Below the pieces are notes generated by a model. It made no database searches, was not told the origin of the DNA, and saw only the letters and a program-made list of their open reading frames with translations. Made by a program: the position numbers and the translations under genes. 64,000 bases of DNA from Rebecca billardiae RCC1528 (Eukaryota > Protista > Haptophyta). Location of the stretch: positions 2,232,001-2,296,000 of the forward strand of contig OZ251223.1 of assembly GCA_965240325.2 (NCBI GenBank). Direction: 5' to 3'. The stretch's first letter is position 1. Each line of letters opens with the position of its first letter. Below, piece after piece: positions 6,353 through 48,279 of the stretch.

Positions 6353-7020
6353 CAGGTGGGTGAGGGCAGAATGAGACAAAATCCCGGATCGTGTTTTGCG
6401 CTCCACCACGATGGCGCTCACGCCCTTCGCGCACGTCGTCGTGGAGGGCATCAGACGAAGAGTTCAAGCTGCGAGTCTCGTGGGCTAACTCCATGCCGTT
6501 GAGGAGCACGAGCACCATCAAGTTTGTCTCACTTTGGGGGGGTGAGGGCACTTTGAGACAAACCGCGTGCGCACGCCCGACGAGCTCACCAACTGGGGAG
6601 AGCAAGCTTCCCATGGGCTCTTGGCGCGTGTCTGACGTCCCTACTACCTCCCATGGCATGGCCAGCCGTCAGGTTGGCGTCCCCTTGCAGTAGTAGACTA
6701 CCTTGCTCACGTCACTGAAGGGCACCGTGCATCGCGGTTCACGGCCGTCTCACAGTGGCGGGGCACGTTCGGCGGCTACGTTTGGTGCGTGCAGGCCAGG
6801 CATGGGCAGCGGGGCGGCCTGCAAACGAGCGGAGGTGCCAGGCATGCACCTTGGGCACACATGTGACGCGTCTCGACAGACTTGCGTCCACCTCACCGGG
6901 CGCTGTAGCGCGTGCGAGGCGGGCGCCATGCACCACGCCCAGTGGGCGCCACTGGACCGCCACTGGGCCGCCACCTTTGTCTCAAAGTGCCCTCTGTCTC
7001 ATTCTGCCCTCATCGACCTG
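6353..7020. mobile_element. Non-autonomous Tc1/mariner-type MITE (668 bp)
   Basis: TIRs CAGGTGGGTGAGGGCAGAATGAGACA / TGTCTCATTCTGCCCTCATCGACCTG, with TA on both flanks (6351-52, 7021-22). Internal copies of GAGGGCA...TGAGACAAA. Confidence 0.85.
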
Positions 7021-7092
7021 TACACGGTCGTACAGCGGTACTTCAGAACTTCGTCGCGCGGCCGCGGCCGCGCCCGGGCGGGCGCACCCACG

Positions 7093-10000
7093 ATGCCCCG
7101 ACGAGACGCGAGCGAGAAGGCGACGTGCGAGGGCTGCGACTACGAGTTCTGCGCGAAGAACCTGGCGAAGCACAAGCGGTCGTGCGCAGCCTACCAGGCG
7201 CTACTCTCGAGGCAGCAGCAAGCTTTCGCTGCGTTTCACAGCTTGAAGCGCGGCGCGGTTGAGCTCGCGTCCGACCCCATCGAGGACGCAGACTCTGACG
7301 ATGACGATGCAGGTGCTGCGGGCGCAGCGCGCGCGGAGCCGAGCCGCCGGCGCATCGACGAACCCGGCGACGTCCAGCGCGCCAGCTGGACGCCGCCAGA
7401 GCCGCGGGCGAGACAGCCCAGCTGGACGCCGCAAGGGCCGCGGGTGAGCTCGGCCGATGACTGCGCTGCTGCCGACGCACTGGATTTGACTCAAGCAGAT
7501 GGCGACGGCAACGGTGATGACGCGCCACGCGCACTGCTGCCGCCCTCGAGCCACGGGTCGCTGCTCATGGAGATGGCGCGCGTGAGCGAGCAGATGAGCG
7601 CGGAGATTCGCAGCCTGAAATCGCAGCTGGCCGGCCTGCCGAAGCAAGTGGCGCAAGCGGTTCCAGATGCGCTGCAGCGGGTCGAGAAGGAGCAGCGCGC
7701 GCGGCGCGACGCGGCTTCCGCAGGGTCTCCACTCGCGACGCAGATCGGCCTCTGCGGCAGCGCTGCCGACATCGTCCGGATCCCCGAGGCGCAGATGCGG
7801 CTCGACCACACGGGCGTGGATGAGGTGCTCGTCTGCAACGTCTGCTTCAAGTACGTGCGGATGGGCGAGCTCGGGAGCGGGTACGGCATTGGGGTCTTCA
7901 CCTCGCTGGAGCGGGTGCCGCAGCTCAAGCAGCACGTGATTGCGCACCTCCTCAGCCCTACCCACCTGGACGCTGCGGCGAAGGCGGCGCTGGAGCGCAA
8001 GACGGAGGCGCTCAACACGACGGCTGGCCGCAACTGCGCGCGGCGCGTGCTGATGGTCGTGCTCGAGCACCAGAGCTACCTCGCCTACGAGCGGCTGATC
8101 GCGACGGGGTCCGCCGAGGGCGTGGAGGTCGGCACGCTCAACCACAGCGCCGACTTCGCGCGCAAGCTCGTCGCGAGCATGCATGTCGCTGTCCTCGACG
8201 CCATCGAGCGGCTGCTCACGACCGTGGACCCGGCGACCCGCATGCGGCCGGCGTTCGCACTAGTCGCTGACAAGGCGACGCAAGGGCGGCAGACGGGCCA
8301 GATGGTCGGCGTGATCGTCATGACCAAGGGCGTCAAGGCGGCGCTGCTGCTCGGCATCGAGGTGGTGCGCGCTGCCCTCGCAGAGAGCGGCGCGATGATG
8401 GCGCCGGGCTCGGGCCGGTACCTCGCGCTGCACCTCCTCGCGACTCTCATCGGGGGCAAGCCGCTCAAGCTCAAGAAGGCGGACGTGCTCGAGCAGCTGA
8501 CAGCGGTCGGCTTCGACGGGCAGTACATGGGCGCTGAGCAGGGCAACGCCTCCGGGCTCGACGTCGCTGGCGCGATGTGCGCCCTCCTCGACATGCGCCC
8601 CGGCTGGCTGCTGCCGTGGTGGGACGGCGCGCACATGCTCGAGCTTGCGGTCGGCGATGCGCGCAAGCTTGCCGTGCTGCGCTGGTGGGCCGACCTGCAC
8701 GTGTTCATCTCCGGCGTGCAGTCGAAGTACCTGTACGGCAAAGGCTTCGACCGCGTGTACCTCGCCGCCCGCCGCGAGATGCACAAGCTCGGGCGCGAGG
8801 TTCAGCAGGAGGCGGAGCGCCAGGCGGCGGAGCGGGCGGAGCCGAGTGCCGACGCCGACGAGTCTGAGCTGCCGAGCGGCCTCGGCGACTCTGGCGACCT
8901 CGGCGACCTCGGCTACCGCGGCAACGGGCAGTGGGCGGTCGAGTGCATCGAGCGCGAGCGCCGCACGAGTTTGGGCGCGAGCGAGTTTCTCGTCAAGTGG
9001 GAGGGCTGGCCCGCGGAGCACAACTCGTGGGAGAAGGAGGCGAACATCGACTCGGGCCTGGTCGCCGAGTTCCGCAAGCGCGCGGATCGGCAGGCGGTCG
9101 AGAACATCCAGCGCGGCGCAGGCGCGGCGAGCGGCGCGCGCGAGCACGCCGGTGCCATCGCTCGGCCAGCCACGGCGGCGCGCAGCTCGACGTGCGCCGA
9201 CGCCGACTCGACCGCAGCGGCTCGCGCCCCGACCACGTCGCTCAGGCGAGCGCGCGCACGACGGCATCAGCGCGCGTGTGCGCGGGCAGTGGGGGCGACT
9301 CGCAGCGCTCTACCACTTCTGCGACACGCGCATGGCGCAGTCCGAGCGCAAGGTGTACAAAAACTTCCTGCGCAACCTGCACCTCTTCGTGCTGGACATG
9401 AATGAGAACGCGTCGCCGGTCGAGGTCGCCAAGGCGCGCTCGCTCATCACCGCCGTGCGGCTCATGGGCGCCATCGACGTCCTGCGGCACGTCAAGGACG
9501 CGTCCCTCGCCGAGCAAAAGGTGAACTCGCTGCTGTGGGAGCGCGATGCTGCCGCTCGCGCCTTTATCGAGCTCCTCCGCCAACTCGAAGGCGACCTGCG
9601 CCGAGGCGACGTGTCGCGCGTGATGCCCGCGCCGGCCGGCTCGCAGCAGCTGGGCGTGCCCGCTCTCGAGTTTCTGCGCGCCAACATGGCCGACCTCGAG
9701 AACTGCACGCTGCAGCTGATTCGCGAGCACAAGGCGATCTCGCTGACGCTGCCCTCGGAGCTGCGGCTCGGCACAGCTTTCCGCCGCGAGTTCCCGATGA
9801 TCGAGTCGGAGCCCAAAGCGGAGGAGGCGCGACGCGCGATCAAGTTCGCGCTGAACGGCGTCGCCGAGATGGCGAAGCGCATCGCTGACAACTACGAGCT
9901 GCGCAGGTTTCGGCAGCAGGGCAGCGCCGAGCATCTGCTTGCGGCGATGGCGGGATGCCTCGACCTGCGCAAGATGGCCAGCTTGAGCGTCGAGGGCGAG

Positions 10001-10998: not shown

Positions 10999-12679
10999 TA
11001 TGGCCCGCGGTGCAGGGCGGAGCGCGCAGCGTGGAGCCCGCACCAGCGGGCCCGAACAACGTTTCAAAAAGATCTTTGATCAAGAAAAAAGGGACGGGGG
11101 ACGATTTTCATGGCTGGAGGAGACCGAGTTTCGAATTTTGAGACCCTGCCTCTCTAACATGCATCAAGGCCGAAAAAGGTCGCGCCCACGGCAAGTTCAT
11201 AGTAAAGCGTGGAGTGACGCCCGTCCAAAAAACTTCACGCCCTTTAGGATCCCTAACGTAACGAACCGTTACAAGCGATTTTTCCGGCCAATGAGATTGC
11301 AGCAAGGTCCAAGGAGCGATGACGTATCTAGATAGACTGATTGCCGCGAACCGATGTGACCATGTACGTCCCTTGAATCAGTTGAATCAACTATTCAATC
11401 GCGCCGTGTCTGTATCAGGAGCCGACCGGAGGCAAGGGTCAGTAGCCGATGGGCCAACCTCGGCGAATCTCAATACTATCTGACGCGAACGGACTTGGTT
11501 GGGCGCGCGCGTGGCCCCGGGCGGCGGCCCACCAGAGGCGGCCCGCGTTTGGAGGCGAGCCACGGGCACGAGGCTCACGAGCGACCGCCACGGGTGAGGA
11601 CGGCGATGGGCAGGTGCGCGCGGCGAATGGCGCCTGGAGCGCGCGGCTGCGGCGGGTCCCGACTGCCGTCGACATCGCGTTCGTCGTGCCCCCGCTCACT
11701 CCGCGCGCCCCCGCCGCCCCTGCCGCCCTGTCGATGCCTCGGCGCGGCCTTGCGCGGCCCCGGCGTGTCCGCGAGCCGGCGCCGCAGCCGCCGCCCTGTG
11801 TTCGGGCTCTCGCAAGCTCGGGGGCAGCGGCGCCTGATGCCGGACTGATCGATCTCTGAGCCTTCGACTTCACCACGCGCCGCCCTTGCCATGCCTTTCC
11901 GGGGTCTCCCAGAACTCTTCTTGATTGAGAGAGAGCAGGCGCGCCGACGATCCGAGTCCATCGTCGGTCGACTCTGAGCGAGGGCTACGCCTCGGAACTG
12001 AACGGTACTCTACGAGGAGGACGAGCTGCGCGGGCGACGGTGGTGCGTGACGTCCCCAGAGCTGGCCGTGCCTCTGCAACGCGTGCCGAGCCTGATCGAG
12101 GTGTGTCAGCTGCCCGTGCACGCGCGGAGAGTGCGCGAACCGGATCACCGGTGCCCTCGCACCTCGGCACCGTGCTCCCTCGGGCTGTCAGCTCCGCGTG
12201 GCCTGGCGTGCACGTAGAGTTGCGCTCATGCGTCGATCACGCCTCGCGCCCGCCTGTCGGCCGTCGCGCAGGCGCTGGTCGAACCCTACTCGGACCCTAC
12301 TCCTCCAGCCCTACTCCCGGGCGCTGCCGGCGCGGGGGGTGACCCCGGGGACAGCGGTCAGCAGCAGCGGCCCGAACGAATCCGCGGCCCCGCACCGTGC
12401 TCCCTGGCTGTCAGCTCCGCGTGGCCTGGTGTGCACGTGGAGTCGCGCTCATGCGTCGATCACGCCTCGTCGCATCCGCCTGTACACAATCGGCGCCGCG
12501 CCGGCGGCTGCAATGGGCCCGCCCGGCGCGGCGGGCGGCGGCGCGCCGCTGATGGAGTCTAGTTGTACGGGCATATGCAACTGGTCTGTCAATAGACGAC
12601 TGCGACGGAGGGTGCACCGCCACCGCGGGCCCTGAACTACGTTCGTTCTACGGAAAAAGGACCGCGGAACGCGGTCATT
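10999..12679 (+). mobile_element. Helentron/Helitron2-like non-autonomous element, copy A
   Basis: 5' GGCCCGCGGTG (11002) is inverted to subterminal CACCGCGGGCC (12621-31), followed by hairpin GACCGCG-GAA-CGCGGTC (12660-76) and ATT. Both ends are homologous to 29725-31020. Confidence 0.7.
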
Positions 12680-14199
12680 CTATTGCTCGATAGTGATGAT
12701 GATCACTTTTTAGCTAACTATCATAGTATCTGTCGGAAGTTCTGTCGGAAGACCATGGGTACACGACCGCGTGTAGTTTGTATCAGTTATGATCCAGGGG
12801 GCTGGCCAGGGTAGGGCTGGAGGCTTCGGCACTAATCGGCCGCCAGCCTGATCACCCGGAGCCCGTTATAAAGGGGAATTTTAAAAAGATGCACGACTGT
12901 TATAGTTATACCATCGGCGACGGCTTCATGGGCGGTGACAGTTGGCGGGCGTCAATCTCGCCTGCCTGAGCTGTGTGCGTCTCTTATTCTTAGTAAACTG
13001 TTGATGATCGCAATGCTTCTCAAGTGACCTTTTTTTCTCGGCGCCAAAAAAAGTTTCCTTCGCGCGAAAAAAGTTTTCCTTCGCGCCAAAAAGTTTTTTC
13101 TTTCGCCGCTGCCGCGGTGGGGCCCAGCAACCGGTCCAGACCTCAGGATTTGGGAAACTCGGAAATTCAAAACCCGCCGCGTGCGCCGCGTGCGCCGCCA
13201 CAGCCATCCGCCGCGAGGCGCCGCCGGCTGCCGCGCCGCCGTGGTCGTAGACGTGCACGCGGCGATGGCGCACGCCGTCGGGCAGAGGCATAGAGCCTTT
13301 CTGCGCCGCCCTGCGCCGGGCGACTCGCGACTGCCCATCTTCTCCGCGCCTTGAGCCCGCACGGACGTGTGCGCCGCCTCTCACTTCAGCCGTGCTGTCA
13401 TCCCCGCAAAGTATGCGCGCGCTGAGAGCAACCCGAGGCGCGCATCCCAGGAAGGTGTGAGCCATGTTACAGTACAGTCGTAGGCGCGCGCCATGGTGCC
13501 CAGCGGCTTCCCGCGCGTGCGTGCCTCTCTGATGCCTCGGCAGGCAAGGCGCCCATGTCTCTGGCTGAATGCGGCGGCGGCGCAAGCTCGTGCTCGCGCG
13601 GGCCTCAAGCTGACCTTCGAGGTGCGAGGGCGCGAAGCGCTGCGCCACGCGCAAGCTACAGTAGTTCACCGCCTCGCTACCGCCCCGCTGCGTCCCATCG
13701 GAAGCTCTACTGGACATCGCGCGGCCTCGCCCTGGCGGCGGTAGGCGCGAGCGAGGTGGCGGCGGCGGCGGCGTTCAGCTGAGTCCGGGAGCGCGGCGCA
13801 CAGATTTCCACCCGGAAACTCTCCTGAGGAGAGTTTTGGGTTTGGGCTGGCAAATCCCGAGGTCTGGACCTGGCTGATTGAGACCCAGCCGTTTCATCTC
13901 CGCGACGTCGATTTTCTGGCGACGCCGCGGAGCGGCTGGCACTTTCCAGTAGCGGCGGCTCAGAGGCCGCCATCGTGCCGATGGCGAAGCGGCGCACGAA
14001 GCGGAACCTCGTCGAGCGAAGCCCCTCGCACGGAGGCGCGGGGGGCGCCAATGACGGCGCGCGCGCCGCCGCCGCGAATCGGAGCGGTCCGGATGGGTCT
14101 GGGCCGGCTGTCTCGCCTGGTGCGCGCCGCGTGCGCGCCGCGCTCACCGCACGCGCGCTGCTTGTTTGCACCCGGGTGGTTTTGGGCGCGACGGGCACA

Positions 14200-14730
14200 T
14201 GTCGGGCAACAACAGCCGTATGACACACTTGGACACACTTTGACGCGTTGGGGGGGCTGGTGGGGGTCATGCTTGACACGGCCCATGTGGCACCTTTTTG
14301 GTTCTCTTTGGTTCTCGGCCGCAATCCGTCATCGCACTCACGCCGTGCGCATCTGGCCGCTCCCGTTGCGCCCCGCCGTCCGCGCACGCCAGGCGAGCTG
14401 GTGAGTGTCCTCAGCAGTTCAACGTGCACCAGTCCCATCTACTAGAATGGGCCGGGTGGAGCCCTCATGGCAGCCTTTTCGCCAGATGAGTAGCATGCGC
14501 GCAGCGTTCACCGCGCAAGCATTGCGTTCGTTGCCACCCGGGATGGCTTGGCGGTTGCGACGGGCACATCGGTCGGGCGACAACAGCCGTATGACACACT
14601 TGGACACACTTTGACGCGCTGGGAGGGCTGGTGGGGGTCATGCTTGACACGGCCCATGTGAAACCGGCTTGGTTTTGTTTGGTTCTCGGCCGCAATCTGT
14701 CGTCTCACTCATGCGGTGCACATCTGGCCA
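14200..14730 (+). repeat. ~160-bp diverged direct repeat (two copies, ~14200-14360 and ~14570-14730)
   Basis: Shared CAACAGCCGTATGACACACTTGGACACACTTTGACGCG...GGTTCTCGGCCGCAATC. Confidence 0.9.
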
Positions 14731-16601
14731 GTCAAGTCGGTTGAGGTGCCCCCATCTCGGCGTGCGGAGGGCAAGTCGATGAGCAGCATTCAGCAGGTGG
14801 TGGCGCGCCTCCCCCGCACGCCGGCATAGTAACCCCAGCCGCGCTACCCGCCGTTGACAAGCACCCTCGCCACGAGGACTTAAACGACGACGGACGAGGA
14901 CGATACCGATTACTGGCGCGCGCGCAAAGATGAGTTGGACGCTGTGACTGTGAGTGTGACAACAACAGAAGCTACTGTAACTTGCTCAGCTCGATGCCAC
15001 CGTCCCGGGCGTCGTCACGTCGGCCTAGGAAGTGACATCTCGGCCGCCGTCCCTGCGTTGGGCCTGCTGCAAGAGCCAGCGAACAGGTAGCTTAGCTGCG
15101 AGTGCCGCCGCCGCGAGGCGGTGCCTTTCTTGCGCTCTCCGCGCGACAGTCGGAGACCATCAGCTTGGATGGGCCGGGCGAAGCCTCGTGCTCGGCGCTT
15201 ACGCCGCTTACGCCGCATGGGTGCCATACTCACCGTGCTCACACGGCACGGCTTGGTTATGCGTCGACACTGGTCAGTCTGAAGAGTGACGCCGGGACAG
15301 TGCCCCTATAACTGCAGTGCCACTCGCAGCTGCGCGTGCTGCGGGTGCTACTGTCAGCTGAACGCGGCCTCGTGACACAGCAGGACGCACTCTGAGACTC
15401 TGAAGCATGGGAGTAGGCGAAGCTGCCAAAGCTCCACCTATCTGCTTCTGCCATGAACACGAGGAGCAGCCTGTGCAGCTTGGGCTCTCGACGTTCGACG
15501 TGCAACATCATGAGCATCATTGCAGCAAGTGCCTCACTGGCGCGGACGGGACTCACGACGATCGCGCGTTTGCACGGCCTTCGCATGGCAGCCTGACGCG
15601 ACAACGTGCTGGCTATCTACTGAGCCTACTGGAGCCGTGATCGCTCGGCTCGCCGGCGCGCGTGTGTCCACAGGAGTGCTCAAGCCGGCGCAGCGGGCCG
15701 TGGTGCCGTGAGACTGAGGGTACATGATGCGGCGTGAGCTGGCGTGAGGCTGTCAACATGGGTGGCATCAGCACAGGTGACAGCGCAGACAGGGACGGAA
15801 CGCGTTACAGTGCGGACGGCGGAGGCGTAGGCGCTCGCGGGGGCGGCGACAGCGCGAGGGCAGGAGCGGGGACGGCGCAGCAGGGCCGAGGCGCCATGCT
15901 GGCTCCGGTGCGGCGGGCTTGAAACGGCCGGCCGCTTTTACTGGAAAGCGCCCGCCGCTCCGCGCCAGCGCGGAGCTCGTCAGACAGGGGCGTTGCGCCA
16001 GCTGGACAAACGCCCTCCGGTCTTTTCAGATCTGCGCTTTTCAAAACGAAATGTTCCGCGCTCTGTTTAGGGCGAAGCGCGGTGGATGGCGGCTCGCCGC
16101 CGCATGGGCGGGCGAGTCGCCGCTGCCCGCAGAAAACGTGCGTCGGAGGCAAGGAAGCAGGCAGATGGCGCGTCGCGCGCGTCGTAGAATTCGGCCGTGA
16201 CGCTCGCCAGCCTCAGCGCGCGCGGCGAAGCCAAGTCCATGGGCGCACTGCGTGCAGGCGGCACGGCCACGCCGCTCGGCCGCGCGACCGGCCTCGCAAG
16301 CGTCCTTGCGGCGCGAAAGGGCATCCCAGCTGCGGTCATTCGACTTGTGCGTCGGGAGACGTGTGCCATCTAGCCAACGCGCACGCGCCGCGAGCTGCAC
16401 GGCGTGCGCACACGTCGCCCGCCGCACCGGTCAGGCGTGCGCCGCAAGCGGCACAGCGGGAGAGGGCCCCGATCCGAGTGCAGGTCTCGCCGGGGCCCTC
16501 CACAAGTCCAAGGATCCTGGACGGTGGGTCCCTTCGCGTTTGTCCAGCTGGCGCAACGCTCTGAAGGCGGGGTCTCAACCCGCCAGGGTCTGGACCGGTT
16601 G

Positions 16602-19171
16602 GAGACCCCTTCAGGGAAATCGGCCTTGGCCCGGATGAAAGCTGCACTGGTGGCCCGGATGCCATCCGGGCCAAGCGCGGCTTGGCCCGGATGGCGAGAT
16701 ACATACGGGATGCCGCTCAGATCATATGCCGTGCGCGCGTGCGCGCGGCCTCGCGCCCGCGCACGGCCGGGCACGGGCGCCGCGGGCCGGCGTTAGCGGT
16801 CGCGCACCGGCGTTTGGGTGCGTGGTACCCGTCCCCGCCCTCTGAGCGTGCCCGCACGCCCTCCTCCGCCGCCGCGCAGCGCGCTTGTGCCTGCGGCCTC
16901 GCGGCCCGCGTGGGCGCGCCGAAAGCACGGGCGCGCACCGAGCCGCTTGTGGCGCATCAGGCCCGGCGCGTGGGCGCATGGCATGGGCATTGGTGAGCAT
17001 ACGCCTTCGGGCTTTCGCGATGCCGGCTGTGCTGAGCCTCCCGACCACGAGCAGCGCGCGTGGCGCAGCCGAGGCCAGGCAGCGGCTGGGCTGACGGCTC
17101 GGGCGCTCGGCGCCGCCAAGCGACACATCCGCGGTCAGGACGAGGCGGCACGCGGCGTATGTGCCAGCTGTAGACTGCATACCATGCGTCAAGCCGCGTG
17201 CGGAGTGTCAGAGCGACGATCGTAGCCGTCACGATCGCGCCGCGCGTGGGGATTGCACATCGGCCGTGTTCGAGCCCACTCCGGCCGCAGGCGTCGAGCT
17301 GGGAAAGCCGTGTAGTGCTGCGCGCCGGCGCGCACGCGCGCGAGTCAGGGCGTGCGCGCGGCCTCGCCCGCGCCTCGGCCATTCCATTGGGCGTGCTGCA
17401 CTGTAATATGGTGCCAGCGGCGCGGCCTGATGTCAGCTGTCGCCTTGTTGCAGGACACCTCCAGCCGCCCAGCCTGGTGCGCTCAGCGCCGTTGTGGCAC
17501 TGTGGTGTGTGTTCCGCTGACAGCGCGAGGCAATGTTTGACAGCATGTCGTCTGCGCACATGTGCCTACCATGTGTGGTAGGCCTTGTAGATGCTCAACC
17601 TGTGACTACTCGTTGCTTGTACCAGGGCCGCGGCGTGATCAGTGCGCAGAGTCAGCACTCTGACTCAAGCACGTCACTGCTGTCAGTGGTGTGCCAGCAG
17701 CGCCCAGGCTGCCGGTGCTTGAGACGGCGATGCATCAACGCCGCTGAAGACATTGCACGCTCGGAGTAGACCATGATCCCGCAAGTCGGTACGGCATAAG
17801 ACAACGCGTCCGATGAAGTCACATGCCCTACCACAAATCGCTGCAGCGAGGATACCCCTAACCCGTGTCGCATCAGACGAGTTGTCTGCCCTGGCACTCG
17901 GAATTGCTGAGGCGCGCGCGGGCCGAGCAAGCTATCAGGTCGCCACTCAGCTGCGATGAGTTGCCAGTTGATGCCATCACTACAGCTCAGCCGAGCGGCC
18001 AAGTCTGAGAGCGCGTCTCAACAGCGGCAAAAGCTGCATCATAGTAGAACTGTGACCGCTGTGCTGGCATCATCGTGAGCTCGTGGGCAACAGGCGTCAC
18101 AGCACATCGTCCACGGCGCAGCTGACAGCGCTGAGCGCATGCTCGCGCGTGCGTAGATCGAAGGCTGCCGCGCTCTAGAAGGCGTGGCCCAGCTGCTGCT
18201 CGGAGCAGTCCGCCTGATATATAGATCAAGCCCGGGGACGATGTGTAGTGCAGCGGGCGCATCATCGACGCTACTGTCTTCGACTGAGAGCGTGACTGAA
18301 TGAGCACTGTCACCATGTGCCGAGCCCACGATGAGATAGGCAGCGCCCACTCACCACACCGGTACAACATTGGTGCAAGCACGCCCGATGGAATGGCCGA
18401 GGCGCGGGCGAGGCCGCGCGCACGCCCTGACTCGCGCGCGTGCGCGCCGGCGCGCAGCACTACACGGCTTTCCCAGCTCGACGCCTGCGGCCGGAGTGGG
18501 CTCGAACACGGCCGATGTGCAATCCCCACGCGCGGCGCGATCGTGAGGGCTAAGATGGTCGTTCTGACACTCATCACGCGGCTTGGCGCATGGCACGTAG
18601 TCTACAGCTGCCGCATACGCTGCGTGCCGCCTCGTCCTGAACGCCGATGTGTTGCTTGGCGGCGCCGAGCGTCCGAGCGGTCAGCCCGGCCACTGCCTGG
18701 GCTCGGCTGCGCAACGCGCGGTGCTCGTGGTCGGGAGGCTCCGCACAGCCGGCATCGCGAAAGCCCGAAGGCGTATGCTCACCAATGCCCATGCCATGCG
18801 CCCACGCGCCGGGCCTGATGCGCCACAAGCGGCTCGGTGCGCGCCCGTGCTTTCGGCACGCCCACGCGGGCCGCGAGGCCGCAGGCACAAGCGCGCTGCG
18901 CGGCGGCGGAGGAGGGCGTGCGGGCACGCTCCGAGGGCGGGGACGGGTACCACGCACCCAAACACCGGTGCGCGACCGCTAACGCCGGCCCGCGGCGCCC
19001 GTGCCCGGCCGTGCGCGGGCGCGAGGCCGCGCGCACGCGCGCACGGCATATGATCTGAGCGGCATCCCGTATGTATCTCGCCATCCGGGCCAAGCCGCGC
19101 TTGGCCCGGATGGCATCCGGGCCACCAGTGCAGCTTTCATCCGGGCCAAGGCCGATTTCTGAAGGGGTCTC
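16602..19171. mobile_element. Long-TIR module (~800-bp arms, ~970-bp spacer) flanked by GGTTG direct repeats
   Basis: 16602-17401 is inverted to 18373-19171. Ends are GAGACCCC / GGGGTCTC, with subterminal GGCCCGGATG repeats. GGTTG at 16597-601 and 19172-76. Confidence 0.85.
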
Positions 19172-19177
19172 GGTTGG

Positions 19178-20230
19178 CGTGCCGCCGCTGTTGCGAGCGC
19201 GCGGCGGGCAGGCGGCGGCGCGGCGGCCCGGCTTGCGCACCCGCGGTGCGGCGGCTTGTGAGGGCGTGCTCCGCTGGGCGGGGCGCGCGCCGGATGTGCC
19301 CGCGGAGCCGGCGCTTGCGGACGGGCTGTTGCGGCAGAGCTTTGGGCGCCCTCCTGCGCCGCGCGTCTTGCGCCACGCCTCTCTCGCCTCGCCTCAGGGC
19401 AGCGCGCATGCGCGCGCCGCCTCGAGGCCAGCGCTGCCCGCGCCGCACGGCCGACCGCGCGCGCGCCGTGCGCGGCGTGGTCGGGAAGGAACGGGCGCTG
19501 CGTGCCGGGCGAGTTGGCGACACCACAGGCGCACGCCATGCCGCCACGCGACGCCGCAAAAAGGCACGAAAGTTGATCTGCAGAAGCTGTTGACGAGTGC
19601 TGATTACTTGTCGTGCCAAGCCAGACCTGAGCTTGAGGAAGATGATGAAAGAGCATCAGCGCCAGAAAAGCGTCGCATTCCGCACTTCTACACGCCCCTA
19701 CAGGGATGAGCATCCATGCGCAAGAGTAGCCCGCGCGCCCGTCTGGCACTGATCTGTGTCTCTGTGATCGTTCAGACAAGGGTCACAGCATGGCTGTGCA
19801 CACCATCTGTGCGCGAAGTCGAAAGAGGCATGCAACGGGCCGACGACACGCTCGTCAAGGCGTCGCGTGGCGGCATGGCGTGCGCCTGTGGTGTCGCCAA
19901 CTCGCCCGGCACGCAGCGCCCGTTCCTTCCCGACCACGCCGCGCACGGCGCGCGCGCGGTCGGCCGTGCGGCGCGGGCAGCGCTGGCCTCGAGGCGGCGC
20001 GCGCATGCGCGCTGCCCTGAGGCGAGGCGAGAGAGGCGTGGCGCAAGACGCGCGGCGCAGGAGGGCGCCCAAAGCTCTGCCGCAACAGCCCGTCCGCAAG
20101 CGCCGGCTCCGCGGGCACATCCGGCGCGCGCCCCGCCCAGCGGAGCACGCCCTCACAAGCCGCCGCACCGCGGGTGCGCAAGCCGGGCCGCCGCGCCGCC
20201 GCCTGCCCGCCGCTCGCAAGCGGCGGCACG
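19178..20230. repeat. Palindromic module (~370-bp arms, ~300-bp spacer)
   Basis: CGTGCCGCCGC...GCGGCGGCACG ends. The ORF track shows identical peptides on opposite strands. Confidence 0.85.
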
Positions 20231-20237
20231 GCTGGGC

Positions 20238-21344
20238 CAAGGGAGTCAAGGGTGCCCGCGCCCCAGTGGCGCGCTCGCCGGTGTGAGGATACACCTTTTT
20301 GCCCGCGGCCTGCGGCGGGCGGCGGCGAGGGCGTGCTCCGCTGGCGGGGCGAGCGCACGGGGCACGGCGCTGCGGGCGCGGATGTGCCCGCGAAGCCGGC
20401 GCGTGCAGACGGGCTGTTGCGGGAGAGTATTCGGCGCCCTCCTGCGCCGCGCGACTTGCGCCACGCCTCTTTCGCCTCGGCTCAGAGCAGCGCGCACGCA
20501 CGCGCCGCCTCAAGGCCAGCCTTGCCGCGCCGCAGCCGGCCGCGCGCGCGCCGTGCGCGGCGCGGTCGGGAAGGAACGGGCGCTGCTGCCGGGCGAGATG
20601 GCAAACGCATGTGCGCACGCCATGCCGCCCCGCGGCGCCGCGAAAGAGCACGAGAACGGATCCGCACAGCTGTTGACGAGTGCTGATCACTTGTCGTGCA
20701 CGAAGCCAGACCTGAGCTCGCAGAAGATGATGAAAGAGCATCAGCGCGAGGAAAGCGTCGCACCCAGCACTTCTACATGAACACGCGGTGATGAACATGC
20801 ATGTAAGAGTAGCCCGCGTGCCCGTCTGGCACTATTCTGTGTCTCAATGATCGTCCCAACAAGGGTCACGACCGCGCAGCCGTGCACACCATTTGTGACA
20901 AGTCGAAGAGGCATGCAAACAGACCGACGACACGCTCATCAAGGCGCCGCGGGGCGGCATGGCGTGCGCACATGCGTTTGCCATCTCGCCCGGCAGCAGC
21001 GCCCGTTCCTTCCCGACCGCGCCGCGCACGGCGCGCGCGCGGCCGGCTGCGGCGCGGCAAGGCTGGCCTTGAGGCGGCGCGTGCGTGCGCGCTGCTCTGA
21101 GCCGAGGCGAAAGAGGCGTGGCGCAAGGCGCGCGGCGCAGGAGGGCGCCGAATACTCTCCCGCAACAGCCCGTCTGCACGCGCCGGCTTCGCGGGCACAT
21201 CCGCGCCCGCAGCGCCGTGCCCCGTGCGCTCGCCCCGCCAGCGGAGCACGCCCTCGCCGCCGCCCGCCGCAGGCCGCGGGCAAAAAGGTGTATCCTCACA
21301 CCGGCGAGCGCGCCACTGGGGCGCGGGCACCCTTGACTCCCTTG
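20238..21344. repeat. Palindromic module (~400-bp arms) with CAAGGG termini, paralogous to the preceding module
   Basis: CAAGGGAGTCAAGGG...CCCTTGACTCCCTTG, with GCTGGGC on both flanks. The spacer is similar to 19550-19860. Confidence 0.85.
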
Positions 21345-22009
21345 GCTGGGCAGCCCCACCGCGGGCGGCAGCGGCGAAAGAAAAAACTTTTTGGCGCGAA
21401 GAAAACTTTTTTTCGCGCGAAGGAAACTTTTTTGGCGCGAAGGAAAACTTTTTTCGCGCGAAGGAAAACTTTTTTCGCGCGGAAGAAAACTTTTTTTGGC
21501 GCCGAGAAAAAAAGGTCACTTGAGAAGCATTGCGGATACTTCTTATTATAATATATGATAATGAAGAAACCTGAAAGTGAAATCTCCCAAATCTCGGCTC
21601 ATGATGAGTCGTCATCAGGCCGCAATATAACGATTTAACGACACAGGCTTTACGCCCAAGTCTCCTGATTCGTCGATGACTGATTCTAGGATGGATTCTG
21701 GCAGACTCTCTTGCCGCGCGCGCCTGATGACCGCGTATTTGCACATACAGGCAGCAGTCTCGGACTACGGGGTGACTAAGTTTTAGATAACACCGGCCCC
21801 TTGATATGGAGCGCGCGACAATGTTATAAGTTATTGCATACACTTACTGTATTGGCATGCATTTTCAAATTCCGACCGAATAGAAGATGGGTAACAGGCG
21901 CCGGCGCGCCGGCGCCCGGCGCCCGGCGCCCCCTAGAAATTTGCTGACGCACGACTCGCACGAGTGCCGAGAACCCTTGCCCCCCCACGGACACGCGCAC
22001 GACGCTGCC

Positions 22010-23500
22010 ATGTTCGCGCTGGCGGTGGCAACCGCGCTGTTCGCGCACGGCCAGGTCTCGACCGTGATCCCGGTGTCGTCCGCTCATATCTACCGCTACG
22101 ACCACTACCCCAACGTGTGCGACATGAACAGTCTGCAGGGGCTGGACATCTTCCCGGGCGGCTTTGGGACGTGCGCTACTTTCGGCGGGCAGTATTTCCT
22201 GTTCGGCGGCTGCCCGGCGGCTACCCCGGCGGTGTCTCTTTATGGCGATTCGGCGTGCGCGACCCTTGTCGGAGGGCCATTCCCACTCCTCGAGGACCAG
22301 TGCGTGACGACCTCGCAGGCAAACCCGGCGACCCCGCTCAAGCAGCAGTGGCACTGCGGAGACGACGTGGCGGCGAACGGCCTTGTGGACCCGCACTCGA
22401 GCTCCGGCGCGTTCACGTTCGACGCGGCGCTCGTCTACTACGCGACGTCCGACTGCTCGGGCACGCCCAACCGGTACCGCCTCGCCATCGCCGATCGCTG
22501 CGTGAGCGTGCCGGACGAGCTCAACCCGAGCACCGGTACTTCGTGGAGGATCGGCACGGGTGGCACGCACGAGAGCTGGGGCAGTGTGGACTGCACCGGT
22601 GATACGGTCGCTTCGACGTCCTACACCAACGAGCAGTGCGTCAACGACTTGGACGGGTCGTACAAGGTCTACCTGCCCTGGGCATGCCCCGCCGGCTGCG
22701 TTCTCGAGGCTGGCCCGCCACAGGCATTCCGCCGCGAGCGGCAGCAGCGGCGGCTGCTCTTCGGCCACTTTGGCCAGGTGGAGCCGCTCACGCCGTCGCC
22801 GCCGCCGCCGCCGCCGCCGCCGGTGGTCGTCTCGATGTCCTTCGGCGGCGATGTCTCCGAGTGGACCGAGGAGAAATCGGAGTCGCTCGTCTCGTTCGTC
22901 GCGCAGCAGCTCAGCACGGCGTGCGGCTGCGACTTTGACGAGTCGCGCATTCGCGTCGTGTCGGTGAGCGCCGGCTCCATCGCTGTCGTCGTCGAGATCA
23001 CCACCCCTCCGGCAAGTGACCCCGGCGCTGGCGGCGGCGCCGGTGGCGGAGGCTCGGCGGACGTGCCTGACACCTTGCTCGACCCGCAAGCCATCGCAGA
23101 CGTGATTGCCGAGACGGACACGGAAGAGCTCGAGGCGAGCGTGGGCCTGCCGGTCGAGTCGCTCGACGTCGCGATCCCGTCGCCGACGCCGACGCCGGTC
23201 GGGACGCCCACGCCCACGCCGGTGCCCACGCCCGCGCCCACGCCGGTGCCCACGCCCGCGCCCACGCCGGTGCCTTCGCCCACGCCCACGCCGGTGCCTT
23301 CGCCCACGCCCACGCCGGTGCCGTCGCCCACGCCCACGCCGGTGCCGTCGCCCACGCCCACGCCGGTGCCGTCGCCCACGCCCACGCCGGTGCCGTCGCC
23401 CACGCCCACGCCGGTGCCGTCGCCGACGCCCACGCCCACGCCGGTGCCATCGCCCACGCCCACGCCGGGCGCGTGCCCAGTCGGCTGCCTGCCGAACTGA
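22010..23500 (+). CDS. Secreted Cys-containing protein with C-terminal Pro/Thr (PTPTPVPS)n repeat
   Basis: Signal peptide [14 protein letters not shown], Cys-rich extracellular region, poly-Pro, and a PT repeat tail. Confidence 0.8.
23178..23466 (+). repeat. 24-bp coding minisatellite (PSPTPTPV units)
   Basis: Tandem CCGTCGCCCACGCCCACGCCGGTG units. Confidence 0.95.
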
Positions 23501-23816
23501 GGACGGGGGCCGGGCTGCGGTACAAGACCTGTACGGTGGACGGATGGACGGCGCGCGTCACTTCACTGACTGAGTCACTCGACGCCGCGTCGATCGCGCG
23601 CGCCCGTGTGCGCGCTCCGCTCACCGCTTCCAGTGACAGCAGCAGTGTTTGGCAGTGGTTCTGACATGACGGCGATGACGGCAATGTGCGAGTGAGACAT
23701 CGGCAGAATCAGCTGCTCCGTCGCTCCGCGGCCGGCTCACTGGCGACCGCTCAATACTCTGCTTACCGAGTTTATAATTTGCTTTTTAAAAATGTAGCGA
23801 ATAAATTAAATTATTA

Positions 23817-25464
23817 ATGGCGGGCCGTAGGTCCGCCCCTTGTAGTGCCCGGGAAAAAGATAAGAAAAAGAAAAAGAAAAAAGAAAATCGCCTCGCAAAG
23901 AAAAGAAAATCGCCTCGCTCACTGCCGGGTCGCTTCGCTCACTACCGGGCGCCCTCGCAGCTCCCACTGGGGACGCTCGGCCGAAAAAGAGTTGCGTCAT
24001 GGCGCGGAGCGCATGGGCGGCGCGCGCCAAATCCAACGCCGGCGCGGACATCGTGAGAGGACTCCCGAGGGGGGTTTTCGCCCGATTTGCGATTGCTGCC
24101 CTCGTCGTCTCGCGTGCAGGTCGAACGGGGGCGAAATCGACGCGTTTGGAGCGGTACGCTCGGCGCGTCGACACGATCGTGCGACCTGGGGCGGTCCTCG
24201 CCTGACTTGCACGTCGAGCGCTCGCACCGGCCATAGTAGCAAGCGCTGCGCATGACAGCCACCTCGCGTGATCCACCGTCGCGCGTCGGGCTCGGTGCGA
24301 GAAAGCCCTCATCACGAGGCGTCTCGCGGGCGGGAAGCGCCATCGCACGCGACGCAAGATTTGGCGCGGCCTTCTGAACTCGATCGCCGGAATCCGCGCA
24401 CCGGACTGTCGCGTGCCACAACTTCTCAAGGAACGGGCGCATGCAAATCCGTTTGCGTACAAGACCCGGTAGCGATCATCTTTCGCGATCGCGGCCAAAG
24501 ATCGCTCAACCCACGTCCGGCCTGCATTGCGTCGACGGTGGCCAATGCGACGGAGGCGCAGCGCAAAGCGGCGTACGAGGCGCACCGCACGCACCTGCTG
24601 GGTCTGCCGCCGTGGCAGGAATCGCGTCTTCGCGAGTCGACGACTGAGGCGACAGCGCGATACAACCGTTCCAGGGCGCTCACTCGCAAAGAGATGCAAC
24701 GTCGCGCGTGCAAGATCGCCGCGCCATCCTCCACCATGGCACGGGCGCTGCGGGACGAGGCCGACGTCGTGAAGCCAGTGGCACATGCGCTGCGCTTCAT
24801 GTGCCTGCTCGAGCAGCTCGTGCCCACCCTCGATCGCGAGTGGCACACGCTCTCGCACTGCGCGCGCGCGCACCACCGAGAGCTCCTGATACCGCCGAAC
24901 GTGCGAGTGCCGGACCTGGCGCGCGGAGCGGCGAGCGCCGACGAGCGCGTGCCCGGTGCGGACATTGGCATCCTGGCGACACACGATCTCAGCTAAATCA
25001 ACATAGAGAGACAGAGAGACAGAGAGACAGAATTCGGTAGGATGCACTAACTTCCGGACGACCTGAACAAATGAATCATGACATCACACTCCGCCACAAC
25101 TTGAACTGTTTTCGTGTTTAGCTCCAAGAACAAACCGTCACCGTCAGGCGTACATGAGCACGCCGCCGTCGCACGGCAATCAGTTGGCAGTGCGTGCGCG
25201 CAGTCGAAGGCTCGGCACGATGACGAGTAGCGCAGTGGGTGCACGAATACACGCGCAATCACACTGTCGGTGAGCTCGCACCAGAGTCATCTGTCGCGTT
25301 ATTATTCGTCAGTGCCGTCGGGTAGCTCACCATCATCTGTATGTCGCATTGTTATTATTCGTCATCCTGCCCGTCAATCCGCTAAAAGACGCGAACCCGC
25401 TGGGGAAATATTGCGACAGCACTGGCACGGCCCGCCGACCCCCCCGCCCGCCAGGGCAGAGTTT
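23817..25464 (+). mobile_element. Putative Helentron-like non-autonomous element (second family)
   Basis: 5' GGCGGGCCGT (23819-28) is inverted to subterminal ACGGCCCGCC (25427-36), followed by an imperfect hairpin GCCC-GCCA-GGGC and TTT. AT-rich flanks on both sides. Confidence 0.5.
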
Positions 25465-26076
25465 ATTTATATTATTGTTTAATAGTGAATAATAGTGAAC
25501 CGAGTCAGAACGTGCGTACTGTACCTTAGTACTACGGACTCAATTAGTTCTAGGACGAACTGACGTTGATTGACAGTCAGTCACAGTGGCAGCGGTGTCC
25601 GGATCGAATTCGATGAGTTTGGCATCATCGCGTCATCACTTCAAGACGTTCAAGATTCTTCATCAATGACGTCGCGAAACTTTGGGCAATATTTATGGCT
25701 CAGGCTCAGCGCGCGCATGTTATTTAAAGCTAGTTAGCATGATCGGCGCTCGAGCCGCCGCCGCCGCCGGGGCGCCCGATGACCCGCCTCATGACGGCGC
25801 CCGTGATCTGGCCGGCCCAGCTGCTTCGTCGTTCGGCAGCCCGGACCGAAGTTCAGTGTCGGCCTCGGGAGTGTCATGTGCATCAAGGAATTCCCCACCT
25901 CCCGCAGCTCTGACATTGTGGGCCGGCTCAGCGCCTCAGCCTCAGTCGAGACCAGCGTTACCAGCCGTCAAGCTTGGCGTCCGAGCTCCGAGTCCGGCGG
26001 CCACTTGCCCCCTCGCACATGCCGCCATGCCAGTCCGGGCAATGGGCGCTGCCGGCGCCGTGCAGGCGGAGGTGGG

Positions 26077-27295
26077 TCAGGAATGCGAGCCGACGTTCGA
26101 CGCGGGATCCGCCTGCATGTAGAGCTCCATCAGCTGCGACACCTGCACCGGGCTGAGGCCGACGTCAAACTGGTGCTGGCTGCGGTAGTTCAGCACCGGT
26201 CCAAAGATGTCCTGGTGGCGATGGCGGCGGCATGGGCGGCGCAGCACCGCGGGCGAATGCGTCGGCGATCGCGGTCGGCGCACCGCGCGCCCGATCGGCT
26301 GCGGAGCGCGGCCGGCGCGTCGCGCACCTCAGGGAGCGGCGGGAAGCGGTGGACGAGCTGCACGCGCACTTGTGTCGGGAAGGGGGAGCCCTCCTGCCCG
26401 CGACCGCCCCGGTGGTGCTTCCAGTGCCCGCTGCCCTTCCAGGCGGTGGGCTCGATGTTGTGCCCGACGGGCGACGTGGCCGTGAAGACGCCATAGAGCT
26501 GCCGGTCCGAGTAGTTGAAGAGGAACAGCGCCGAGTCGTGCGGCACGACGCTCTCGCCCGCGCGCTTGTACGACCTCGTGTCCGGCAGCCTGAGCGGTGT
26601 GTCGCGCGCGCGCGCGTGCAAGGGGCGGCGGTGCGTGAGCCGCGCGCACAGCTCGGTCCACGGCCGCCGGCGGAGGCAGCGCACCCGAAGAGCATGCGCT
26701 TGAGGCACTCAGCCATCGTCGCCTTGTTGCACCCGAAGATCATGCCCGTGCTCGTCCGGTTGTGCCGCCAGTTGGACAGCTTCTGGTAGACGGAGCCCGG
26801 ACCCGCCTCGCCTCGGCTGCTGACGCCCGCCGATGGGCTGGGCAACGCCTCGCGGCCGTTGGCCGGGGTTGGGACGACCATAGCCGCGGCGCGCGCGCGC
26901 ACGACCTCGTCGACCTGCGGCATGGATCGCGCCAGCTCGATCAGGAGCGCCTGCGCCTGCTCGCTCGAGAGCGCGCTCACAACCTCGTCCAGAGAGACGC
27001 GCGAGGCGACGGGCGGCGGAGGCGGTGGCGGCTCGTGCGGCTGTGGTGGGGGGGGCACGGGCGCGACGGTGTGCGCCGTCTCAGCGGCCTCGGGCTTCGC
27101 GATGGTCAGGTCCACGATTCGCTCCGCGGCCTGGCCGCAGAACGGGCAGCTGAGGCCCACGCCCGGCTTGACCGCGTCCGCGAGCATGTCGGCGCAGTCC
27201 TTGCAGAGCAGGTGCTGGCATCCGAGGATGCGCTTCTCGTTGGGGTTCGACCCGCAGATGCCGCACAGCGTCGTCTCGTCCCCCGCCTGCGACAT
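26077..27295 (-). CDS. RING finger plus DCD (development and cell death) domain protein; introns 26590-26684 and 26212-26327
   Basis: CGIC...CQHLLCKDC...CPFC RING. The spliced C-terminus reads GMIFGCNKATMAECLKRMLFGLP...LFLFNYSDRQLYGVF...NIEPTAW...SPFPTQVR...PLPE (DCD). GT-AG introns restore the frame. Confidence 0.85.
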
Positions 27296-27479
27296 TGTTT
27301 CCTCCCGCTCCCGGCGTGCGGGCGCGGACCCCGGCTCGCCGCGCGCTCGCTCCGACTCGGTGGCGACCTTGAATCCGGAAACTTATTGGACTACGACGCC
27401 GGACCCTGGTCCCTGTGTGCAAGGTGGCGGCTGCTCTCCATCTCGCCGCTTCCATCTGTGCCGTCTACGACTCGGGCCA

Positions 27480-28934
27480 ATGCCACTGGTCTCAGCGACG
27501 GGCCCGCCGCTCGTGGATGTCCTCGACGACCTGGTCTCGCGTTTCGTGCTCAACTGCCCCGAGGAAGAGAAGGAGTCGTTCGAGCGGCTCTTCTTCCAGA
27601 TCGAGTCAGCCTTCTGGTTCTACGACGACCACTACCGCGAGAAGTACCCGGACCAGTACCCGACGCTCAACCTCAAGCAGTTCGCCGAGAAGCTCTTCCG
27701 GCACTGCGAGGTGCTGAAGCCGTACAAGGAGCGCAGCGCCGAGCTCTTTGCCAAGTTCACCGACTACAAAGGCCGCGTGCCCACGTGCGGCGCCGCCATC
27801 CTCGACACGACGCTCACAAAGCTGCTGCTCGTGCGCTCGTGGAACGGCACGACGTGGGGCTTCCCGAAGGGCAAGATCAACAAGGGCGAGGCCGACCACG
27901 AGTGCGCGATCCGCGAGGTGGAGGAGGAGATCGGCCTCGACATCACGCACCTCGTCGACGTCGGCCAGTACCTCGAGCACAGCTACGGCAAGGGCACGAC
28001 GATGAAGCTCTTCCTCGTGTGCGGCGTCGACGAGCGCACGCACCTGGAGACGCGGACGAAGAAGGAGATCGGCGCGATCGTCTGGCACTCGCTCGCCGAC
28101 CTCGGCTCCGAGGCGGCGAAGAAGGACCGGGACATGTTCATCGTGCAGCAGCTGCTCGCACGCATCAAGAAGTGGGCGGCCGAGCGGCGCAAGGCGCTTG
28201 CTGGCGGCGGCGGCGGCAAGAAGCAGGCCAAGGCAGCGGCCTCCGCGACGGTGGCGGCGGCCGGAGCCACGACGAGTTGCGCCGAGTGCTCCGGAGCCGC
28301 ACCCGCCGCCCCCGCGCCGCAGGCGCCGCCGCCAGGCGGCTTCCAGTTCGGGTACGAACGCGAGCGCGTGGATGTGAGCGGTGGCGGAGTGATCGAGGGC
28401 GGGCAGGGCGGCCGCGGGAAGGGCGCGCGCGAGCGCGCGAGCGTCTCGCAGCAAGGTGGGCGGGCGGTGCCTCTCGACAACAAGGTGACCTTCGGCGCCG
28501 ACTCGAAGGCCAAGGGCTGGTCCGTGAAGGACATGTTCCGCACGAACGAGCAGAAGTTCAACCTGCAGTCGACGTACAGCTACGAGCTGTACACGACGAG
28601 CCTCTCGGGCAAGCCGAGCACGTGCGCGACACAGGAGACCACTCAGGCGGCGCGGGTGCGGCGCGCGGCGCAGCCGCCGCCGATGCAGACGCCGGCCACG
28701 CCCGCCGGCTTGGCGGCCGTGGATGCTGGTGCACCCATGCCAGCCTCCTCCGCGGCTTCAGAGGGCTCGGGGAGCCAGCGCGGGCGCGGCGGGCGATCGG
28801 GGCGTGGCGTAAAGGCCGCGGCAGCAAAGCAGGGCAGCGCAAGGGCAGGCTTCAGCTTCGACCATGCGGCCATAATGGCCACGTTCGACGCGACCGTTGC
28901 CGCGCGTCAAGCAGATCTGATCGCGGCGACGTGA
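27480..28934 (+). CDS. DCP2: mRNA decapping enzyme Dcp2
   Basis: Box A LDDLVSRFVLNCPEEE...RLFFQIESAFWFYDD and Nudix motif WGFPKGKINKGEADHECAIREVEEEIG. Confidence 0.95.
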   Translation: MPLVSATGPPLVDVLDDLVSRFVLNCPEEEKESFERLFFQIESAFWFYDDHYREKYPDQYPTLNLKQFAEKLFRHCEVLKPYKERSAELFAKFTDYKGRVPTCGAAILDTTLTKLLLVRSWNGTTWGFPKGKINKGEADHECAIREVEEEIGLDITHLVDVGQYLEHSYGKGTTMKLFLVCGVDERTHLETRTKKEIGAIVWHSLADLGSEAAKKDRDMFIVQQLLARIKKWAAERRKALAGGGGGKKQAKAAASATVAAAGATTSCAECSGAAPAAPAPQAPPPGGFQFGYERERVDVSGGGVIEGGQGGRGKGARERASVSQQGGRAVPLDNKVTFGADSKAKGWSVKDMFRTNEQKFNLQSTYSYELYTTSLSGKPSTCATQETTQAARVRRAAQPPPMQTPATPAGLAAVDAGAPMPASSAASEGSGSQRGRGGRSGRGVKAAAAKQGSARAGFSFDHAAIMATFDATVAARQADLIAAT

Positions 28935-28993
28935 CGGCAGCATGCACGATCGACGACGACGAGGCGCGCCGCACTCGGACGAGGAAATCACTA

Positions 28994-29498
28994 CAGGCAA
29001 TCGCGGGCAATAAGGAGCTGTCACGTTAAGAAACTGGGGCTTGCTATCTGCGGATCTGGCCTAGAAACTGAGGCTAGCGATTGGCTGGTTCGCTATACGC
29101 ATAGTCACACTAAGAAACCGGGACTACGTCGTCCCGGCTGACGAGTGGTCCGCCGAGGGGCGAGGCGCAGTCGGCCCGTCGGGGACGCGGCGCGCGGCCC
29201 GACTACGAGTACAGGCCAAGTCCCGACTTCTCCTGATGACTGACTCCTGGCCAGTGCACCGCAGCATCCATGCAACATCATGCCAGATTTGCTCCAAAAA
29301 GGCCCAAAATTTTCGTCGGCCTCGCCGGCCGGGCCTAAAGACTCAGCGGGGGGCTCTGCCCCCCTGCGCCCCCCGCGCCTGCGCGGCGGGCGGACCTAGC
29401 TAAGAAACTGAGACTCCGTAGGCGCTCGGGCTACCGAACGGCTAAGAAACCGAGGCTAGCCGTGAGATCTCTGACTTCTTATTGCCCGCGATTGCCTG
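28994..29498. mobile_element. Tc1/mariner-type MITE (505 bp)
   Basis: TIRs CAGGCAATCGCGGGCAATAAG / CTTATTGCCCGCGATTGCCTG with TA flanks. Internal AGAAACYGRG repeats. Confidence 0.85.
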
Positions 29499-29724
29499 TA
29501 ATCAGTGCTGCCCGAATAATATGAGGATCAGTGCCAAGTCGTGTAGTCAGAATCTAGTTCGTACCGTACACGGGGTTACACTACTAGCTAGCTGTCGTAA
29601 CATAGCAGCTATAGTTGAAGCAGCCTACGACTGACTTCGATGAAGCCGCCTATGATGCGGCCAACTAGATATCAGCGATTATCGGTTATAGTAGTGCAGT
29701 AGTATTAGTCGTCTGCTATTATTA

Positions 29725-31020
29725 AATGACCGCGTTCCGCGGTCCTTTTCTGCATAGAATCAACGCAGTTGGGGGCCCGCGGTGGCCGTGCAATCGCGGC
29801 TCTCCGCCGTAGTTGCAGTTCGCCAGTTGAAGTCGGTTCTGAGATGACTGAATATAAGCTATTACTAGTCCGACCGTCGCCCTGCCTGCGCGACCGCGAG
29901 ACTCATTCACACTTCACACAATCACAGCAGCGGACCTGAGACCGCACCCGGCACCGGTCGTCAAATCGGACGTCCGTCTGACAACTAGCTGCCAAATGTC
30001 CAACTGGCTGATCAGCTCGGATCCGACCCGTCCGCGATCGTGCCATCGGCATCGGAATTACTACTAGTAGCTGCCAAACTGTGTCCAACTCTGGCTGATC
30101 AGCTCGGATCCGACCCGTCCGCGATCGTGCCGAGTGAGTCGTGCCGCGGAGCTCGGAGTACTGAAGGAGTCGGGTGTGACAGCAGGGTGCTTTAGCGCTG
30201 CGGCCCGTGCCAGCCAACGACCAGACGTACTCTGGCCACTTGACCCGTTGCACGGGTGAGTGACCGTACGCCCTGCCTAGTGCCTACCGCGCGCGCCGCG
30301 CGACCGGCGACTCGGGGTGATGGAGAGCGGATGGCGACAGCAGCAGCAGTCCTCATGAAGACGATGAAACTGGCGGCACGGGTGCACGAGGTGGCAGGCG
30401 AAAGCGCGCCGACGAGACCGCATTTGACACACCTGAGCCGCACGCGCGTGCCGTCGCCGAGCCGGCGAGCGCTGCAAACGCGCAACCGTACCGCGCGCGC
30501 CACGACGGCGCGGCACTAGCTGATGCAGGCCGTACTGCCGGCACTGCTTCTGCGATCATGCGCCACGGTCGCAGCTGACTGCGTGAGCAGCAAGCGGGAG
30601 GCGGGTCCGGAGGCACGTGCAGGCGCCGTCCCGCATATCCGCCATCGCCCATCGTGCCGGGGCACGTCACCTCCGACGATCCGGATGTGTCCCAGTCCGG
30701 ACGTCACGCGATCCGGGAAGACGAGTACGATTCGCTCGTAACGAACCGTTACACTAATGCCACGGCCAGGCTCACGTCCCGTCCATCGATTACTTATGGA
30801 ATCAGCTGGGCGCGCTCTTTTTCGGCCTAATAGACCTCTCTATGCGATCTCAAAAACTCGAAACTCGGTCTCCGCCAGCCCTAAAAATCGCCCCCCGTCC
30901 CTTTTTTTCCGCCGCCCCCCGTCCCTCTTTTCTTGACGATCAAAGATCTTTTTGAAACGTGGTTCGGGCCCGCTGGTGCGGGCTCCACGCTGCGCGCTCC
31001 GCCCTGCACCGCGGGCCATA
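29725..31020 (-). mobile_element. Helentron/Helitron2-like non-autonomous element, copy B
   Basis: Reverse-complement homology to 11000-11270 and 12610-12680, with the same sub-TIR and hairpin but a different interior. Contains a ~60-bp direct repeat at 29986-30131. Confidence 0.7.
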
Positions 31021-47953: not shown

Positions 47954-48106
47954 GCCCGCCGCAGCGGCGCAAGCGCCTTTGGCGACGGCGAGGCGAACGC
48001 CTGGCCTGACGCCGTTGGCGCAGCAGGCGGCGCGCCGAAGACACCCCCCCCACTGGGGGGGGGGTGTCGTCCGCTCCGGACCGGTTCGGGGGTTGACGTC
48101 CCAAGC

Positions 48107-48221: not shown

Positions 48222-48279
48222 CACGCACGGCTGCTGCGCGGCGCAGCGTCTCAAGCGTGCTCGCCGCGGCTCCGCCCAA

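Follow-up and report, generated by a model that had tools for sequence, protein, structure and literature searches.

A narrow hotspot of non-nested transposon insertions in one arm of a non-coding inverted-repeat element of Rebecca billardiae

Structure of the Array

The window analyzed here is a stretch of 64,000 nucleotides from the haptophyte Rebecca billardiae RCC1528 (assembly GCA_965240325.2, contig OZ251223.1, positions 2,232,001 to 2,296,000 of the forward strand), and the subject of this study is a block of inverted-repeat DNA at positions 13009-21534 of this window. The main parts of the block are listed in Table 1; element boundaries were identified by scanning every register of end symmetry combined with flanking duplication. 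The outer terminal inverted repeat (TIR) starts at 13009 and 21534 with an exact GAT on both flanks, as recognized in a first-pass annotation made from the sequence. When four inserts are taken out, together with one target-duplication copy apiece, what remains is a 1,057-bp TIR element with a GAT duplication, and the right end of this peeled element, aligned with the left one over the entire 144-bp arm, shows one substitution and otherwise only indels. This host element is non-coding. The locus is a real, tight, multi-family and non-nested insertion hotspot, and not an integron-like cassette system.

Table 1. Parts of the array and a free relative of insert 4 (window coordinates)
Position	Strand	Feature	Ends, duplication, and remarks
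13006-13008	+	Left target duplication of the host element	GAT, exact match with 21535-21537
13009-13152	+	Left TIR of the host (1,057 bp in all)	CGCAATG end; corresponds to the hotspot arm but holds no insert
13153-13849		Non-coding host body	"Module 1" of the first-pass annotation
13850-13869	-	Inner part of the host right TIR	Ends with copy 1 of the 9-bp GGTCTGGAC (13861-13869)
13870-16586		Insert 1, 2,717 bp	CTGG ends, 9-bp duplication GGTCTGGAC (7 bp if the ends are CCTGG)
15980-16564		Candidate further element in insert 1	TCAGA ends, 24-bp exact inverted repeat
16587-16601	+	Spacer	Second GGTCTGGAC copy, one host base, first GGTTG copy
16602-19171		Insert 2, 2,570-bp foldback	GAG...CTC ends, duplication GGTTG (or 7-bp CGGTTGG)
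19172-19178	+	7-bp spacer	Second GGTTG copy overlapping the first GGC copy (19176-19178)
19179-20229		Insert 3, 1,051-bp foldback	GTGCC ends, 3-bp duplication (ambiguous), 377/371-bp arms, 303-bp center
20230-20237	+	8-bp spacer	Second GGC copy overlapping the first GCTGGGC copy (20231-20237)
20238-21344		Insert 4, 1,107-bp foldback	CAAGGG-N3-CAAGGG ends, 303-bp center, 7-bp duplication GCTGGGC
21345-21534	-	Outer part of the host right TIR	Includes the second GCTGGGC copy
21535-21537	+	Right target duplication of the host element	GAT
45998-48228		Free CAAGGG-family 115-bp palindrome (46005-46010 joined to 48113-48221)	7-bp duplication CACGCAC

None of the four inserts lies inside another, though those already present provided kilobases of possible target DNA. 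All four targets fall within one 22-bp stretch of the host right arm, at positions 853-861, 863-867, 867-869, and 868-874 of the empty host element for inserts 1 to 4, respectively. TIRs with an exact flanking duplication are clear for the host and for inserts 1, 2, and 4, while insert 3 has a duplication of 3 bp only. At a fixed register, an exact duplication is expected by chance with a probability of 6e-6 for 9 bp, 1e-3 for 5 bp, 4e-2 for 3 bp, and 2e-4 for 7 bp. In three cases the length of the duplication is ambiguous by two (9/7, 5/7, and 7/5), because the outer bases of the duplication are complementary. Insert 3 can be read with the duplication GGC or with an imperfect one of 5 bp and CGTGCC ends; the fit to the host left arm is 78.7 for 3 bp and 74.7 for 5 bp, which is not decisive.

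Insert 1 has diverged arms of ~110 bp (~87/96 identical, with many gaps). Inserts 2 to 4 are long-armed palindromes, and alignment bears out the inverted repeats noted there earlier: the 800-bp arms of insert 2 (16602-17401 and 18373-19171) are 96% alike with 28 substitutions and three gap columns, the arms of insert 3 (19179-19555 and 19859-20229) are 98% identical with no substitutions and six gap columns, and the 402-bp arms of insert 4 (20238-20639 and 20943-21344) are 99.8% identical with one substitution. Over 860 bp, inserts 3 and 4 share 85% identity, and their centers are equally long, but they differ in the first 60-100 bp and in the duplications. Insertion into a tip followed by arm-to-arm copying could be the source of such end swaps, resulting in the same body with different ends. 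Within the host body, a 130-bp segment (13250-13380) resembles the arms of both these inserts at ~69%.

Long palindromes pose a challenge to assembly, and a block of this kind might be produced by fold-back chimeras or collapsed repeats. We consider such an artifact extremely improbable, since the arms differ from one another, inserts 3 and 4 differ by 15%, an intact arm reappears once the inserts and their duplications are taken out, unlike what artifacts leave, and the nearby region 25440-29018 is a 100% match to a public contig.

Both host arms carry a 21-bp A-tract repeat, in ~2.5 copies on the left (13041-13097), where there is no insert, and in 6.4 copies on the right (21378-21511), with the insertion spot lying 27-48 bp to the inside of this array. 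The right arm also has extra stretches of 1, 3, and 4 bp adjoining the insertion spot; these could be excision footprints. The flanks of the host element are 39-48% GC in a window of 67% GC. In folding, the junction DNA does not surpass shuffled sequences, except for 16555-16620 (z -2.4), where the excess is explained by the relatedness of the ends of inserts 1 and 2.

The previously noted absence of an intact enzyme inside the array stands, as none of the 14 open reading frames (ORFs) or open frames scanned there has a Pfam match. One of these frames also had no match against 1.8 billion proteins. The Rfam search gave no match, and pattern scans of viral contigs gave none either (0 matches). 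The single match in the metagenome pattern scan is a chance one, in a bacterial-type gene without wider similarity, and no other copies were reached via incidental ORFs.

The duplication of insert 1 reads equally as 9 bp, within the 8-11 bp of Mutator-like elements, or as 7 bp. Insert 4 has the 7-bp duplication and long arms characteristic of the P superfamily and Galileo; no element with a THAP or P-type transposase and the same ends was found within the window. The PHIS groups have 3-bp duplications of the ANT, CWG, or C|TNA|G type (PMC4482050), and neither GAT of the host nor GGC of insert 3 fits any of these types on either strand.

The interior of insert 1 contains a direct repeat of ~230 bp (84%; 14129-14358 and 14493-14729). 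The TCAGA-ended candidate within the same insert has no clear duplication and is probably a further element nested ~22 bp from the right tip.

Test of a Shared Landing Motif

According to the first-pass annotation, the block consists of palindromic cassettes added by a site-specific, integron-like system at one GGYTGG site. The hexamers it listed are present where it had placed them, four GGYTGG copies do occur at the junctions, and the units follow one another without gaps or nesting. The 22-bp stretch itself holds GGTCTGG, GGTTGG, and GGCTGG in succession, and look-alike hexamers appear at the junctions because staggered, overlapping duplications copy this one stretch piecemeal. The spacers between neighboring element tips are 15, 7, and 8 bp, instead of one duplicated 6-mer, and the offsets of the tips from the nearest motif are -11, -2, -1, -1, 0, +5, +7, and +8 bases. 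A single site-specific recombinase would be expected to produce one register; the several tip registers speak against it. Further, the window has many copies of the motif (105, with 87 expected in shuffled sequences), and units excised between motifs lose their end symmetry, with only 1-6 of 15 bases matching.

The redrawn boundaries also change the identity of several proposed modules. The supposed module 13133-13870 is the host body, and what were read as its "20-bp arms" belong to the inner end of the outer TIR, which runs ~25 bp beyond the motif thought to terminate it. The next module, placed at 13878-16578, is replaced by insert 1 with its own duplication, and GGCTGA at 13872, taken for a junction, sits inside the left end of this insert. 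The inverse correspondence of 13128-13142 to 16587-16601 is confirmed, and represents the host arm and the duplicated target.

The tip of insert 4, CAAGGG-N3-YAAGGG, is confined to this insert in the array but recurs at 48107; at no more than one mismatch, it has four matches in the window, with 0.3 expected. The free palindrome found there (Table 1) is flanked on both sides by exact copies of CACGCAC, which is unlike GGYTGG and allows no 5-bp reading. In the CAAGGG family, the duplication is fixed at 7 bp and the family is not tied to GGYTGG; this control covers one family, through a short relative in the window with the same tip and not a full copy of insert 4. The expectation that free modules would be flanked by GGYTG thus fails for the sole relative in the window. 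A 2.1-kb TIR element (46011-48105) with CTTGGGACG ends and the duplication CCAAGGG or CAAGG splits the palindrome six bases from the tip. The tip of this TIR element is complementary to its own duplicated target.

Integrons use a tyrosine integrase, an attI/attC core, and a fixed crossover point, and their units carry genes. The present array resembles them in that units were added at one spot one after another, possibly in one direction. In contrast to integrons, it has no attC-like site and no fixed crossover, the scanned internal frames gave neither a recombinase nor a cargo gene, and its units have TIRs and staggered-cut duplications that differ in length, sequence, and register. Hence an integron-like origin is very unlikely, and the locus does not reveal a eukaryotic integron. 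What holds from the initial proposal is the serial insertion of TIR elements at one narrow spot, each duplicating its target; the shared landing motif does not.

Origin of the Hotspot

The diversity of the duplications in length, sequence, and register points to at least two transposases, and probably three or four. A rival explanation is a single P- or Galileo-like lineage that makes 7-bp duplications, with a loose preference for such G+C-rich sites: inserts 1, 2, and 4 can each be read with 7 bp, Galileo-type foldbacks make duplications of this length, and inserts 3 and 4 have a common body. Such an origin is nevertheless improbable, given that insert 3 has no 7-bp reading and the inserts have no end motif in common.

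The clustering is far from random. If insertions were uniform over this element, the chance that three later inserts would all fall no farther than 22 bp from an earlier tip is ~5e-7, and for 5,000 insertions in 72 Mb (both the count and the genome size are assumed) the expected number of four-insert clusters is ~1e-5. If the same 5,000 insertions were confined to ~2% of the genome, again an assumed number, about one cluster of four in 30 bp would be expected; therefore, a narrow preference for open chromatin could suffice for a single case. The order of the inserts is not readable from the overlapping duplications. The identity of the arms rises from left to right, toward the A-tract array (~87/96, 96%, 98%, and 99.8%).

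We favor, with a probability of about 0.68 for the account as a whole, a miniature inverted-repeat transposable element (MITE) as the host and four ordinary cut-and-paste insertions at a context-defined spot. The 1,057-bp non-autonomous TIR element entered an AT-rich stretch ~470 bp upstream of a gene, as its GAT duplication and flanks show. Four non-coding TIR elements of other families then inserted by cut-and-paste, using enzymes encoded elsewhere. As the reconstructed targets show, each insert duplicated whichever bases its enzyme cut in the 22-bp stretch, and the overlapping duplications of GGTCTGG/GGTTGG/GGCTGG mimic one repeated motif. The narrowness of the spot would come from the DNA or chromatin context rather than from a sequence motif: the array of six A-tract copies probably excludes nucleosomes or binds a protein, and resident transposon ends may strengthen the attraction. 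Newcomers would land between the latest insert and the array, and the gradient of arm identity suggests that the stack grew in one direction.

Several observations weigh against this account. A number of the duplication lengths are ambiguous (9/7, 5/7, and 3/5), and three of the four inserts are compatible with a uniform 7 bp. The empty site was reconstructed from the host left arm alone, and no transposase is linked to any insert. Arm identity is a weak clock, and a given order of four items arises once in 24.

Alternatively, the transposases of several families could be steered to resident TIR ends by a bound protein or a bent end, so that stacks grow whatever the chromatin. Each duplication adjoins or overlaps the preceding one, the free CAAGGG palindrome provides a second tip insertion in the same 64 kb, and the candidate near the tip of insert 1 is likely a third. 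The right tip of insert 1 resembles the target, with ~0.5% of random 12-mers scoring equally, but the resemblance of its other tip is at chance level (9%), and under the assumed ~2% confinement about one such cluster is expected without any end-targeting. We regard this mechanism as a doubtful, though not negligible, alternative. It is similarly a tentative suggestion that several unrelated transposases are steered just inside the A-tract array of the MITE, or to transposon ends, with one-directional stacks recording the order of insertion.

In any case, the locus shows how tightly several transposon families can converge on one spot that offers neither a microsatellite nor a common target word. 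If found genome-wide, such convergence would indicate a shared context-based targeting rule and a route for the swapping of foldback ends.

Comparison with Known Arrays

Among the closest parallels are the SaTar arrays of guayule and rice, which are likewise linear, end-to-end, and non-nested series of unrelated non-autonomous TIR elements (PMC5907723). SaTars have microsatellite targets, consist entirely of Mutator-like elements, and are often without duplications (PMC5907723), whereas the target here is 22 bp of G+C-rich sequence in the arm of another element, with exact duplications of several lengths. The microsatellite trait is absent: the spacers of 7-15 bp are complex sequence, with no tandem repeat at the junctions. 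For this reason the locus does not count as a SaTar array, although it functions in a similar way to SaTars and to the P-element, MITE, and Galileo systems described next.

In tandems of the Drosophila P element, neighbors are likewise separated only by bases of the target duplication, and preferred sites lie near promoters (10.1101/158386). These tandems involve one family and one duplication (10.1101/158386), in contrast to the four different ends and the staggered, overlapping targets seen here. MITE multimers of rice and maize likewise have MITEs as preferred targets, and include adjacent and nested forms that arose by independent events; for instance, the Ditto MITE is a target of many other families (reviewed in PMC5172404). 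Finally, the foldbacks Galileo, Newton, and Kepler likewise have long arms, 7-bp duplications, and secondary colonization by other elements (PMC2775673). The Galileo hotspots are inversion breakpoints with nesting (PMC2775673), while the present elements have no linked P-type transposase.

Neighboring Genes and Repeats

The insert stack lies in the upstream region of an intact-looking gene for a secreted-type protein (22010-23500). This proline/threonine-repeat protein has no Pfam match, and no homolog was found for its first 389 residues. Two further host-like genes follow, encoding a RING-DCD protein (26165-27295) and the mRNA-decapping protein DCP2 (27480-28934); the best named relatives of the latter, at 46-50% identity, are in Prymnesium and Chrysochromulina. 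On the other side of the array, a 900-aa ORF (6703-9405) contains a chromodomain (Pfam E 5.5e-12).

Short dispersed repeats occur near both flanks of the array, one of 43 bp (12839-12881 and 56010-56052; 98%) and one of 45 bp (21632-21675 and 35227-35271; 84%). Farther away, a head-to-tail dimer of a ~0.8-kb unit lies between (TA)n tracts at 52300-53981, which is a SaTar-like setting, and a scaffold gap of 100 N is located at 58642-58741, far from the array.

The array and the three host-like genes are enclosed by two further nested inverted-repeat pairs, 10998-31021 (~145-170 bp) and 12613-29792 (68 bp), with related subterminal motifs; the outer pair is flanked by AT or TA. The segment 10998-31021 is possibly a 20-kb gene-carrying element.

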